DNA of 64,000 nt, taken from assembly GCA_977030845.1 (NCBI GenBank), contig OZ365110.1, positions 41,168,001-41,232,000 on the forward strand, read 5' to 3'. This stretch comes from Fimbriosthenelais zetlandica (Eukaryota). The stretch's first letter is position 1. Each line of letters starts with the position of its first letter. Shown one piece after another: positions 41,466-58,752 of the stretch. The translations under genes and the position numbers were made by a program. A model generated the notes under the pieces. The model was not told where the DNA came from, searched no databases, and saw only the letters and a list, made by a program, of their open reading frames with translations.

Positions 41466-41531
41466 CATCTACACGCATGGCTGAACCTTGGAATCAACAT
41501 ACAAGTAGAGCCAATGACGGCGGACCAAGTC

Positions 41532-41548: not shown

Positions 41549-42223
41549 CATTCACGCGGCTTTCCCCAAAATGTAGACACATGGTCTCACACACACCTAC
41601 ACATTATAGACGCACGTCATCACTGCTCCAGGCTTCCGCATGTCTATGCTTTTCCAGGGCGCCCTGCTCCAGTGACCTTATTTATGCATAGCATGTGTAC
41701 ACTAGTATCTAGAGGCCGCTCTATAGATGGTTCCATCTCGGTGCAAACTTTGTGGCCCATTTTCAGTGCAAATAAAATTAAATTTCTCACAGCCGAACAG
41801 AGCAGAAATAATTTGTTATGCACTGGCCTTCACTTTATGCCTGTGTTAATTAATTCGGAACTTTAATTAACGTTTTGAAATTAAACAGATATTGCATTAA
41901 TAGAAAGAAACGTATATAGATTTCGATGTTCGAGGTCGTGCGTCTATAGTGCATATGGGATGAGTACTTGGTATAGGCTAGTGGTGGAAGAGGACTTTTC
42001 AGGACAGGATAATAATTAAATTTGATGATAAAATGTTTCCATCTGCTACCATTAACGCAGGAATATATAATGGTCATTTGCAAAATTTGCTGATCTATTT
42101 TTTCAGAATTGGTAGGGAAATTACAAGGGAGTTTTGTGGGAAAATATGAGCGGGGGAGCAGTGGCCTACGTCTTCACACGGTGGCGGTCTGACTCGATCT
42201 GCCAGCAGCCTGAATGCCTGGCG

Positions 42224-42265
42224 GACTTATATAGCGGTCTAAAAATAGATTTTCTCTCGACCAAT
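42224..42265 (+). promoter_or_regulatory. Proximal KLF2/4 promoter element: CTTATATA-GCGG-MEF2 (CTAAAAATAG at 42239-42248) plus CCAAT box (42261)
   Basis: gacttatatagcggtctaaaaatag...accaatcagcg; canonical MEF2 decamer ~350 bp upstream of the predicted ATG. Confidence 0.75.
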
Positions 42266-42600
42266 CAGCGTTGAGGAACAGAGGGATCCCGGTCATACTG
42301 CAGAGTAATAGCAATTTACTAGAAATTCCATCGTTATTCACTCACAAATGGGTTCCTAGATGGGTAGAAGAGAGTCACGCTTCTGATTTGGAGAGTTTTT
42401 GGAGAGCTATAAGTAATTTTACACGAGGGATTCCGATCAGTTGTTGATTTGATCTTGACATAGAGACATTTGTGGATAGAGCAATAGATTGACAAACATT
42501 TTCCAGCCTGCAAAGCAGCAAAGGACTTTTGCATTGGTGAAAGTTTGGACTTCGGTTGTTGATATATACATTCAGCCTCCCCAGGTTTCATCAAGAGAAA

Positions 42601-42693
42601 ATGACTTCAATGGTTGATCCTTTACTTACTTCTACTAACGACATGTATTCTTCAGTGTACAACAAATCAGAGGATACCATCGACCTACAAAGT
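42601..42693 (+). CDS. KLF2/4: KLF2/4 first coding exon (MTSMVDPLLTSTNDMYSSVYNKSEDTIDLQS)
   Basis: ATG at 42601; 93 nt; strong AGT|gtaagt donor; phase 0 joins VWADVESFL to give [13 protein letters not shown]; an upstream non-coding exon is possible. Confidence 0.75.
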
Positions 42694-44393
42694 GTAAGTA
42701 TTGACAACCTTTTTCAAGCATTTACTTTTTTAAAAGCATTTTCGCAAAATATTAATGTTACTCTGTCAATACAGCAATAGTTGGATATCAGGTGAGGAAG
42801 TGATTGTAAATTAAGCTAGGTGACATTATTTAGATGTGAAGCTAATAATTAGTGGTAGAAACCAGGTGGTAGCAGCTGGGGATGGACAGACAGTGACTGA
42901 CATAAATGATTTATTTCCCCATGTCCATCAAGTAAGTATTGTGTCTCATAAGATAAAGGACATTAAACATCGATTCTCTATTATTATGAAACGCACACTT
43001 GGTTTTAATAAAACTCACTCTTTTGATCACAACAAAAGCCGCGACTTTAGTACATTAGATAGGCTGGGAGACAGGGAGCGCGTGGTGGTATAGCGTTTGT
43101 TGGCAATCCTACGTCAGAGATTCCCACCCGCTTGGGAAAGGAACATAGAACGCTACACTTGTGTCCCGTCTCTGCATGGCCATGGCCGTTCAAGCGAATG
43201 TTCCACCAGAACTTTCATGAATACTCTCCGCTTGAGATAGTTTACATGCCTAAATCATCCTATAAGCTGTTTATTGACTCAAAAAACAACCATGCCTTAC
43301 AGCCCTTATCATTCAAAATGTCGCTAAGTGCAGCGAGAGTGAATATTTATCGATTATTTTGTGCGCAGATGACTTTTGAATGACTGAGTGTTGTGGCGCC
43401 AAAAATACAGCACTTAATCATCGTCTGCTGGTGTTTGGTTTTGGAGAGGTGGGGGATTTCCTCCCAACTCCTCTCAGCGGTACAGTACCGCCCCCTAGTT
43501 GATGCGACTGAAACTATTGCGGTATAGCATCGTATAGTCAAGATGAGTTTCCCCATAAACTAACCTAGTACCGTTAGCACAGTATCCAAACATGTGGTAC
43601 CTTAATATGGGGTACTAGTCTTCATTGTGGGGCACTGTTTCAAAAGTAAAATTACCAATGCAAAGTCTATCGCTCAGCCTCTATGTCAGAAGCCAAGTGT
43701 ATACACATGGCACCTGGTTTGTTGCCGTATGTTGGTTGTGTAACTTGACTGTAGGTGTCGCTAGCGTCTGTAAGTTTGGGACGCAGCTTAGCTGTGGTTG
43801 GCTAATGGGGGATGACTGAGACACAGGTGAGAGACTGATTTACAATAAAAGAAAAGGTGCGCGCTCCAGCTGTCACATTACAATCCCGGGAGTTAAAACA
43901 GTAAGTCATCGAGCTTAACACTTAGGATTAGTAGGAGAATCTTAGAAGCATTAACATGGAAGGCGTAAACAAACAGGGCACCATGTGCCATGTCATGAAG
44001 GTTAGTCTTTGTAACTAATATACCAATAATATTGGTGGACCTTTATTTTAGGTTTCGTTTCATATTTACTCATCTTTAAATTTACTTTAAGGATGAGAAC
44101 TTTACCTGTTTTCTAGGAAAAGGAAGTTTTGATTTTTAAAAATTATTATCTTCCTTGGATAATTAAATAGGGTTCACCACTTGTTGTGAAGTACATGATT
44201 GTATACTTCCCTGAGATATGTTTTAAGTCATTCGGTTGTAAGGCAGTTTGAGGGTCTAGAAAACTAAAATGAACATAATTGCATTATAGTTTATATTGCG
44301 AGAGTAGGATGATGTTTGGAGATTGATATATTTTTTATGTTTTCATTTGTATGGCCGAGTTATTTATGTATGTTTTTATTTGTATTTTTTTAG

Positions 44394-45728
<1,335 letters not shown>

Positions 45729-57042: not shown

Positions 57043-58752
57043 GTAAGTGAGCCTTTATTGCTTACGGTATAGGAACAGTTTACCTAATACTGATGTTCAG
57101 AGTGAATGACCGCATTTTCCAGAAATATCTAAACAAAATAATGGATTCACATTGCATGACGTACATATGTAATTCTGCCTCAGATGAATTTAGGGAGTGT
57201 AAGGTAACTGGAAGGGATGTAATTTTCTGGGTCAGCTACATACAGCAAATGGTTTTACACTGGGTTTCAAGTTGTAAATAACAGGAAATGTCTAAGACCT
57301 AGTCTAGGCCATACTGGATCAAATGGCCGTATACCCTGGACTGTTTACAAAGTTAGTGAGATAAGGAATGTATCGGGAATAATTGATACTTGAAGGTTGA
57401 ATTGGTGTTTTCAAGATTTCAAGACTAATGGTGTGGTCATGTTCTGAAAAATGTTAGGAACGTAACGTTAGATCTACATTTATTTCTCTCTCGCAATAAG
57501 AAATACCATTTAATCACATGCACTATTTAAGTTACCTGTATGTGTTTCCGTGACTGAAAGACTCGCCCAAAAAATGAATCTATATAAAAAGGACTTGCTG
57601 GGGGCCAGCTGACTCAACAAAAACATCCCTGCCACCATGATCCGTTTATACATTTAGTCCGAGCTTAATCTCATTCCAAGTAATGAAACGTAAGATTGTA
57701 AAAATATGTCACGATAGGAGAGCTCCGAAGCAGGTTGCTGATATACGGAGATTTATTGTCAAAGGCCGTCTACGTAGGTTAAACAAATAAAAACCTTAAT
57801 TGACCCATATCTTTGGAATGCACCCAAATATATATATATCTAGCATGATGTTTGTTTTGAAGGCGTCAATATTAATTTTTCATTATATAAAATATTAAAT
57901 TAAAAAAATAAGTGAGAAAGGAATGGGAAAATGAGACACGGGACCAAATACTTTAATTAATTTGAATTTAGATTTAGATTCAGACCCTCGCATGGATTGG
58001 CTATCATTTGGAGAAAATGACGGTAAAAGTCAGGGAATGGAAAACCCCGGCCGGGGAAATGCCTTATTTTTCGTAGAGTTCATTTCCGAATTATGACTTT
58101 TTTCGCTTGTCGGCCCAGTTCACTGTCCTGACATCAGAGATAATGATGTACCTGGAATGGAGTGCGGTTAGGTTATGGATTTTCAAGCACCTTGATTAAG
58201 ATTGATCTATATTTGAGTCAATTAGGGATCAACTTTCATGAAATTCTTAGTTGTTATTCATTATTCATAAAACCTTCTACAAATTTAATTCCTTTCACCA
58301 TTTCTTATTAGGGGCTATAAATTATACTGTGTTATTTAAAGGATGGTTTTTTTACTCTCTGCAGCTGGGGCATCGTCCTTTCTTCTGTTTTGTTGCTCCA
58401 TATTCAATGTTGTACATATATATAGACTATTATTAGTATACCATTAGTAGTATACTATTCCTTATAATGATATCGCCAATATCTAATGTCTGATTTATTG
58501 TATTTATATATCATGATTAGCCACAGAAACTTTGGTTTGACTCTCTCTCTCTCTAGTCCTGGTATGGGATGGTCTTTCGGGCTAGTATCATAATGTGACA
58601 TATACATATCGATTATGTTTGAAATTATTACTATTACAACTATAATTATCATATACCCTACCCATGAAGTGTGGGGGTTTGTGTAAGTGTCCTTGGCGCC
58701 TGTGCAAAACTATATACCTGAGATATTTGATTGAACCGTATAAAATTATTGC

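Follow-up and report, generated by a model that had tools for sequence, protein, structure and literature searches.

Previous studies of the vertebrate KLF2 promoter have described a "MEF2-TBP double motif" as its shear-stress and MEK5-ERK5 responsive element, one that needs both of its halves and binds more TBP under fluid shear stress (Fleisinger et al., bioRxiv 10.64898/2026.02.04.703710). It is very rare across the genome, and its conservation extends from human as far as zebrafish; copies are present at the promoters of KLF2 (-110 to -134), KLF6, and KLF7, at two enhancers of KLF2, and at one KLF4 enhancer lying at -148 kb (bioRxiv 10.64898/2026.02.04.703710). In human, the KLF2 promoter copy is printed as GGCTTATATACCGCGGCTAAATTTAGG (longer form CCGCCGGCTTATATACCGCGGCTAAATTTAGGCTGCGCC); CTATAAGG follows about 77 nt after its MEF2 site, and the gene starts 110–134 bp downstream of the motif with its own TATA (bioRxiv 10.64898/2026.02.04.703710). 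Citing Sohn et al., the preprint equates the TATA-like half with their "A/T-rich motif A," and its authors view TBP at the enhancer copies as an ordinary factor and not as part of an initiation complex (bioRxiv 10.64898/2026.02.04.703710). In mouse, the Klf2 MEF2 core reads ctaAATTtag (PMC4108324). The word "invertebrate" does not occur in the preprint, which shows conservation from human to zebrafish only, and our literature search found no work on the MEF2-TBP motif at invertebrate KLF genes.

Two other described systems come close. In Drosophila, MEF2 and TBP cooperate on the A/T-rich DNA of a compound MEF2-TATA box of antimicrobial-peptide genes, where one overlapping site is the gene's own TATA at about -31 (Clark et al., 2013, PMC3807682). 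The locus studied here lies in a 64-kb stretch of DNA (hereafter "the window," i.e., the whole stretch analyzed), and its two TATA halves, CTATAWAAG, resemble the fly consensus CTATAWAAGM (PMC3807682). Unlike the fly box, however, the window has a separate, full MEF2 site 4–6 nt from a TATA that faces away from the gene; identity with the fly element was rejected, as its final M is unmatched and its 5' C is absent in other species.

The other system comprises the reverse core promoters of divergent transcription, together with focused promoters of the TATA/Inr type; an example is reportedly given by Duttke et al. 2015. Here a TATA is followed, ~30 nt downstream on the antisense strand, by a CA initiator, the presumed sense start lies 100–250 bp away in the downstream direction, and NF-Y/CCAAT stands between the two. 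The window module resembles this layout, with a CA that is initiator-like and a spacing 2–5 nt longer than the textbook value. We know of no reverse core promoter that has been described as conserved across phyla.

A MEF2-TATA module upstream of a KLF2/4-type gene

The features of the window that bear on the comparison are as follows.

35328..35349, minus strand: possible third copy, CTTTTATA-CCGG-TTATATTTAG, gap 4, 7.25 kb upstream
41444..41465, minus strand: distal full copy, CTTTTATA-GCGG-CTAAAATTAG, gap 4, 1135 nt upstream of the ATG
42198..42201, minus strand: initiator-like CAGA, A at 42200, 34 nt from the first T of the TATA
42226..42233, minus strand: TATA box half of the proximal module, CTTATATA on the plus strand, canonical TATATAAG on the minus strand
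42234..42238, no strand: spacer GCGGT, 5 nt, its length kept across species, its sequence not
42239..42248, no strand: consensus MEF2 site CTAAAAATAG, CTA....TAG invariant in the 10-species alignment
42261..42268, plus strand: CCAAT box of NF-Y type (CCAATCAG), 12 nt gene-side of the MEF2 site
42407..42413, plus strand: sense CTATAAG, candidate TATA box of the KLF mRNA by analogy with human KLF2pr
42601..42693, plus strand: KLF2/4 coding exon 1, 93 nt, 31 codons, ATG at 42601
44394..45728, plus strand: KLF2/4 coding exon 2, three C2H2 zinc fingers and the stop codon

Exon 1 of the gene ends at a GTAAGT donor (42694), exon 2 is preceded by a polypyrimidine/AG acceptor, and the protein carries three Pfam zf-C2H2 domains. 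Among solved KLF structures its finger region is best matched by KLF4, ahead of KLF5 and KLF10, and membership in the KLF1/2/4 type is indicated by its full-length relatives, which carry the UniRef name Krueppel-like factor 2. The top full-length matches are from Lingula (44%) and from abalone, scallop, oyster, and mussel (40–44%), with an annelid also present, while similarity to echinoderm proteins is confined to the fingers; vertebrate, amphioxus, and cnidarian proteins are absent among the matches listed in these protein searches. A maximum-likelihood KLF tree unites hemichordates with echinoderms (support 100/99) to the exclusion of the window protein, which falls with two ENA contigs inside an unresolved spiralian polytomy. 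On this protein evidence the animal is most likely a spiralian and not a deuterostome.

When the window is compared with its closest relative in our set (L001), only exon 1 (77% identity, at 8144–8233 of the relative) and a 33-nt intronic block align, and the promoter DNA does not. The block lies in KLF intron 1 and is 94% identical to the relative (about 9620–9640). In the window it reads CACC-ATG TGC CAT GTC ATG AAG-GT (43983–44000, donor GT at 44001): an ATG in Kozak-like context opens six codons that lead into a splice donor, and the phase fits that of exon 2. The block has the appearance of an alternative first coding exon (MCHVMK) kept in both genomes, which would point to a second promoter within the intron.

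The first-pass annotation had placed an element resembling the vertebrate Klf2 palindrome at 42224–42265 upstream of KLF2/4, and this placement is exact: GACTTATATA at 42224–42233, GCGGT at 42234–42238, CTAAAAATAG at 42239–42248, and CCAAT at 42261–42265, with 352 nt from the MEF2 site to the ATG (42601). Its wording of the vertebrate element also agrees with print, both for human (the GGCTTATATACCGCGGCTAAATTTAGG of the preprint supplement, bioRxiv 10.64898/2026.02.04.703710) and for the mouse core (PMC4108324). It erred, however, in routing KLF4 through a proximal site, as the vertebrate KLF4 double motif lies in the -148 kb enhancer (bioRxiv 10.64898/2026.02.04.703710).

A consensus MEF2 site, YTA(A/T)4TAR, is present both at 42239–42248, where the mouse and human equivalent is CTAAATTTAG, and at 41456–41465 (CTAAAATTAG), and each is adjoined by a TATA motif on the minus strand (TATATAAG at 42233–42226; TATAAAAG at 41451–41444). 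This TATA half corresponds to the "TBP motif" or "A/T-rich motif A" of the vertebrate KLF2 promoter, and in both window copies it precedes the MEF2 site on the 5' side and runs in reverse, just as in human KLF2pr-0.4. A second initiator-like candidate, TCAGA on the minus strand, has its A at 42190. By analogy with human KLF2pr, the candidate CTATAAG at 42407 would perhaps place the KLF mRNA start near 42437.

The distal copy has companions of its own, a CCAAT at 41511–41515 and a minus-strand CAGA with its A at 41419. Its alignment with the proximal copy is limited to the motif itself and the flanks are not alignable; thus, a recent segmental duplication of the two was ruled out. The possible third copy (35328–35349) has neither a CCAAT nor an initiator-like motif beside it, and from its sequence it is a weaker case that could be a distal enhancer or chance. 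It lies in a gene-poor upstream flank: between 20000 and 41500 of the window, a span of over 20 kb ahead of KLF, no long open reading frame of convincing coding character was found. Elsewhere, a TA-rich low-complexity stretch at 58417–58436 gives a formal MEF2 plus TATA match (CTAATAATAG..TATATATA) that probably arose by chance; the window has no other clearly off-target match. Rfam gave no match in window 30–48 kb.

The bare CTAWWWWTAG is not rare in the window (5 found vs. 2.2 expected). The composite of YTAWWWWTAR, 4–6 nt, and TATAWAWR, in contrast, occurs four times in 64 kb on both strands against 0.085 expected under an order-2 Markov null, and 3/4 of these composites lie upstream of the KLF gene and on the same strand.

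Conservation across invertebrate KLF2/4 loci

We compared the window with up to 10 kb upstream of the orthologous gene in ten other invertebrate species (eleven in all): the closest relative, Lingula anatina, Saccoglossus kowalevskii, Patiria miniata, Haliotis asinina, Owenia fusiformis, Ischnura elegans, Diadema antillarum, Tubulanus polymorphus, and Antedon mediterranea, a sample without amphioxus, tunicates, cnidarians, or further ecdysozoans. Both strands were scanned for YTAWWWWTAR plus 0–15 nt plus TATAWAWR. The module occurs at most 1.3 kb upstream of the ATG in 10/11 species, window included, with carriers in six phyla (a brachiopod, a mollusc, an annelid, a nemertean, a hemichordate, and three echinoderms, besides the closest relative and the window). 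Sequence, spacing, orientation, and position are conserved across these phyla and match the human element. Specifically, these ten species hold 15 strict composite matches, every one (15/15) on the strand opposite the gene, and although gaps of 0–15 nt were allowed, those found are of 4 nt (4 copies), 5 nt (9), and 6 nt (2). In the remaining ~310 kb of the loci (328 kb), the only matches with gaps of 4–6 nt are the one at window 58436 and the third copy at 35349. The MEF2 site stands 154–260 nt from the ATG in annotated genomes, 352 nt in the window, and about 340 nt in the closest relative, where the ATG was set by exon-1 alignment with the window.

Chance is a poor account of this distribution. 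Per 22-kb locus, the Markov expectation is 0.005–0.05 composite matches; the highest rate gives a chance of ~0.0015 per species (one strand, 1.3 kb), and 10/11 species would then have a probability of <1e-20, a figure whose null ignores the TATA-richness of promoters, though the margin is very large nonetheless. A search of metagenome contigs for CTTATATA-N4-6-CTAAAAATAG returned at least 120 mostly AT-rich contigs, with no KLF gene among the matches listed, and is uninformative on this point.

In the 10-species alignment the invariant columns are the TATA core and the CTA/TAG half-sites, plus one G, and BLAST misses the module even between the two closest species. Spacer sequences differ among species (GCGGT, GCGG, CCTAAG, CCCTT, GGAG, CGGG, CAAGG, and others), so that the GCGG which the first-pass annotation had taken for a shared middle part was ruled out as a conserved third part; what is kept is a spacer of 4–6 nt that is mostly G/C-rich. 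Counted from the MEF2 10-mer to TATAWAAG, the spacer measures 4–5 nt in the window and 4–6 nt in invertebrates vs. 6 nt in human; the preprint's own count is 3 bp, with 2 in one zebrafish element (bioRxiv 10.64898/2026.02.04.703710). The preprint's scan range of 2–4 corresponds to 5–7 nt here, which includes the proximal copy (5) and leaves the distal and third copies (4) just outside.

Second copies were found in the window, Saccoglossus, Patiria, and Antedon; that of Tubulanus is slightly degenerate (TATATATT), and Haliotis has a possible degenerate one. The element is so short that the orthology of individual copies, unlike that of the module, cannot be established. Variable copy number and differing distal contexts point to turnover of copies.

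The only locus where the scan gave neither a strict nor a relaxed MEF2-TATA match is that of Ischnura elegans (67 kb, with a 47-kb gene), which could reflect loss in insects or a distant first exon. In the tree, the KLF2-like protein of Ischnura sits with a cockroach protein on a very long branch. In C. elegans the ERK5–KLF-3 link does not act on the level of klf-3 mRNA, and together with the insect that lacks the module this suggests that the transcriptional link may have been lost or rewired in ecdysozoans.

On what the first-pass annotation had proposed as pan-deuterostome conservation, the deuterostome part stands: the element was found in the hemichordate and in three echinoderms, and its presence at such loci had been set in advance as a test. 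The restriction to deuterostomes does not stand, since spiralians carry the module too; because the window KLF groups with spiralians, the conservation spans protostomes and deuterostomes and is wider than proposed. The further proposal that the whole element, and not just its MEF2 site, predates vertebrates appears to hold, to judge by the composite, orientation, and spacing at 10/11 invertebrate orthologues.

The companions of the module are conserved as well. A CCAAT or ATTGG lies 3–56 nt gene-side of the ATG-proximal copy in 10/10 species (at exactly 12 nt in the window, Saccoglossus, Tubulanus, and Antedon), where such a pentamer is expected by chance, on either strand, in ~13% of 70-nt stretches. 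On the other side, the TATA half is always a strong consensus (TATAWAAG/TATATAWA) on the strand opposite the gene, and an antisense CAG(T/A) with its A at 33–37 nt from the first T of the TATA accompanies 9/10 proximal and 12/15 of all copies. This motif was noticed post hoc in the alignment and then tested; when the downstream sequence was shuffled 2000 times, no 5-nt window gathered more than 5 or 6 sequences (5 for the proximal copies), so that the observed counts were unreached, and a gene-side control gave no comparable fixed-distance CA peak. Going by the printed supplement sequences, the human KLF2 promoter and the KLF2-41 enhancer carry CACT, its A standing at 34 and 37, respectively. 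In the invertebrate copies with CAG(T/A), the TATA begins at -32 to -36 from the CA, a distance longer by a few nucleotides than the usual -30/-31.

Several local identities were also seen beside the module. Saccoglossus (about 9836–9852) and Diadema (about 9833–9849) share the identical 17-mer CGCTGATTGGCTGAGCG around the CCAAT, a longer identity than an NF-Y consensus by itself would call for. Patiria and Diadema, the two eleutherozoan echinoderms, have an octamer-like motif immediately after the MEF2 site (ATGTAAAT at about 9790–9802 and ATGCAAAT at about 9807–9819, respectively). The distal copies of Saccoglossus (9546), Patiria (9391), and Antedon (9516) have a perfect AP-1/TRE site, TGACTCA, which on the minus strand begins 13–19 nt past the TATA box; going by its sequence, this site may mark a further conserved input, one confined to the distal copies of ambulacrarians.

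Taken with the vertebrate motif, whose sequences here are from one preprint supplement, the invertebrate module shares a MEF2 site beside TATAWAAG, the TATA half 5' and reversed, a promoter-proximal place at a KLF gene, several copies per locus, and a spacer held to a narrow range of lengths in each. The two differ in their surroundings: every invertebrate proximal copy is flanked by a CCAAT box, in place of which the human KLF2 promoter has GC boxes. Like the deeply conserved non-coding elements of bilaterians, the module is kept at orthologous loci in protostomes and deuterostomes; unlike them, it is a motif grammar of ~22–70 nt with no alignable block.

A proposed reverse-facing promoter, its alternatives, and its meaning

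Read on the minus strand, the module runs CCAAT, MEF2 site, 4–6 nt, TATAWAAG, about 25 nt, and an initiator-like CA, the textbook order of a focused promoter, here facing away from KLF. We interpret window 42198–42268 as the proximal copy of such a four-part promoter module, with a second copy at 41419–41515, and most likely as the invertebrate counterpart, by descent, of the vertebrate MEF2-TBP double motif. As the conserved initiator-like CA lies at a fixed distance, the TATA half probably works as a true core promoter in the reverse direction. We consider the whole of this reading—a four-part module related by descent to the vertebrate motif and working as a MEF2-aided reverse TATA promoter—to be probable.

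Mechanistically, a MEF2 dimer on CTAAAAATAG would help TBP/TFIID to bind the TATA box, which lies half a helical turn away. This TATA, facing away from KLF, would probably start a short non-coding antisense RNA ~33–37 nt further on, while the cluster of MEF2, TBP, and NF-Y would keep the shared promoter open and raise sense KLF2/4 transcription from a start predicted between the CCAAT box and the ATG (42270–42600). From the sequence we infer occupancy by MEF2 and TBP, antisense initiation, and signal dependence; by analogy with vertebrates, binding of MEF2 and TBP would be co-operative, and activation would depend on MEK5/ERK5 and require both halves. A divergent protein-coding target of the antisense TATA was ruled out, with no tblastx matches between the regions upstream of the gene in the window and in its closest relative. 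No gene is called within 10 kb upstream of KLF2/4 in eight genome records, and with no coding partner, no tblastx similarity, and no long upstream open reading frames, any antisense product would be non-coding.

How the TATA half is used is where the alternatives diverge. TBP can bind a TATA in either direction, and the inverted TATA could in principle be KLF's own core-promoter TATA in reverse, with the mRNA starting ~30 nt downstream, in or just after the MEF2 site; in its favor, the ATG of most species is only 154–260 nt downstream. We find this scarcely credible: the CCAAT box would fall inside the transcript, loci have two or three copies, the control detected no fixed-distance CA on the gene side, and the human KLF2 gene starts well downstream of the motif from its own TATA (bioRxiv 10.64898/2026.02.04.703710). 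More weight, though still in the realm of the unlikely, goes to the suggestion that TBP, or another A/T-binding factor, is a conventional MEF2 co-factor that initiates nothing, the CAG[T/A] being the site of a separate factor. Such a role fits the weak Pol II and TFIIB signals at KLF2 enhancers despite strong TBP (bioRxiv 10.64898/2026.02.04.703710), earlier work in which other initiation factors reportedly could not be assembled there, and the absence of the CAG motif from both Antedon copies and the third window copy. It leaves unexplained why the TATA half should be a strong TATAWAAG in one fixed orientation, why a CA should stand at a fixed, initiator-appropriate distance in 12/15 invertebrate copies and two human elements, and why the minus strand should present CCAAT, activator, TATA, and Inr in the layout of a textbook promoter.

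Descent itself has a competitor in convergence, under which functionally favored MEF2 plus TATA composites arose independently at KLF promoters and are analogous, not homologous. The element is short, its copy number ranges from one to three, distal copies sit in differing surroundings (in ambulacrarians, beside AP-1 sites), and the vertebrate motif is also found at KLF6, KLF7, and distant enhancers (bioRxiv 10.64898/2026.02.04.703710), all of which such an origin would accommodate. Retention is nonetheless far simpler given the same orientation in 15/15 copies, an ATG distance of 150–350 nt, and the accompanying CCAAT and CA, all at orthologues that are single-copy and come from six phyla, and we regard convergence as improbable.

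By sequence, adjacency, orientation, KLF association, and conservation, then, the element appears to belong to a known kind, the MEF2-TBP double motif. Four features appear to be new: its reach past vertebrates into six or more invertebrate phyla, the constant presence of a CCAAT box beside it in invertebrates, an initiator-like motif held at a fixed antisense distance there and in human, and the repeated occurrence of two copies per locus. Cis-regulatory elements recognizably common to protostomes and deuterostomes are very rare, and here two sites, their order and orientation, the 4–6 nt spacer, the CCAAT, and the initiator-like CA are kept at the same gene. The link from MEF2 to KLF2/4 would accordingly be at least as old as the last common ancestor of spiralians and deuterostomes, and would thus predate endothelium and closed vascular systems. 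The data offer independent evolutionary support for the preprint's claim that the TATA half is essential (bioRxiv 10.64898/2026.02.04.703710), and the conserved antisense initiator suggests a concrete alternative to its TBP model. Sea star, sea urchin, acorn worm, and annelid are tractable invertebrate systems for the element.

More speculatively, and at a strength we would call doubtful, the combination of MEF2, TATA, Inr, and CCAAT might be an ancestral bilaterian signal-responsive unit that coupled MAPK (ERK5-type) or mechanical/flow signals to KLF2/4 before there was an endothelium. If so, a reverse-pointing core promoter driven by MEF2 would gate how the single KLF2/4 gene is induced, vertebrates would have co-opted this unit for their flow response, and "TBP as transcription factor" would be re-read as antisense initiation.
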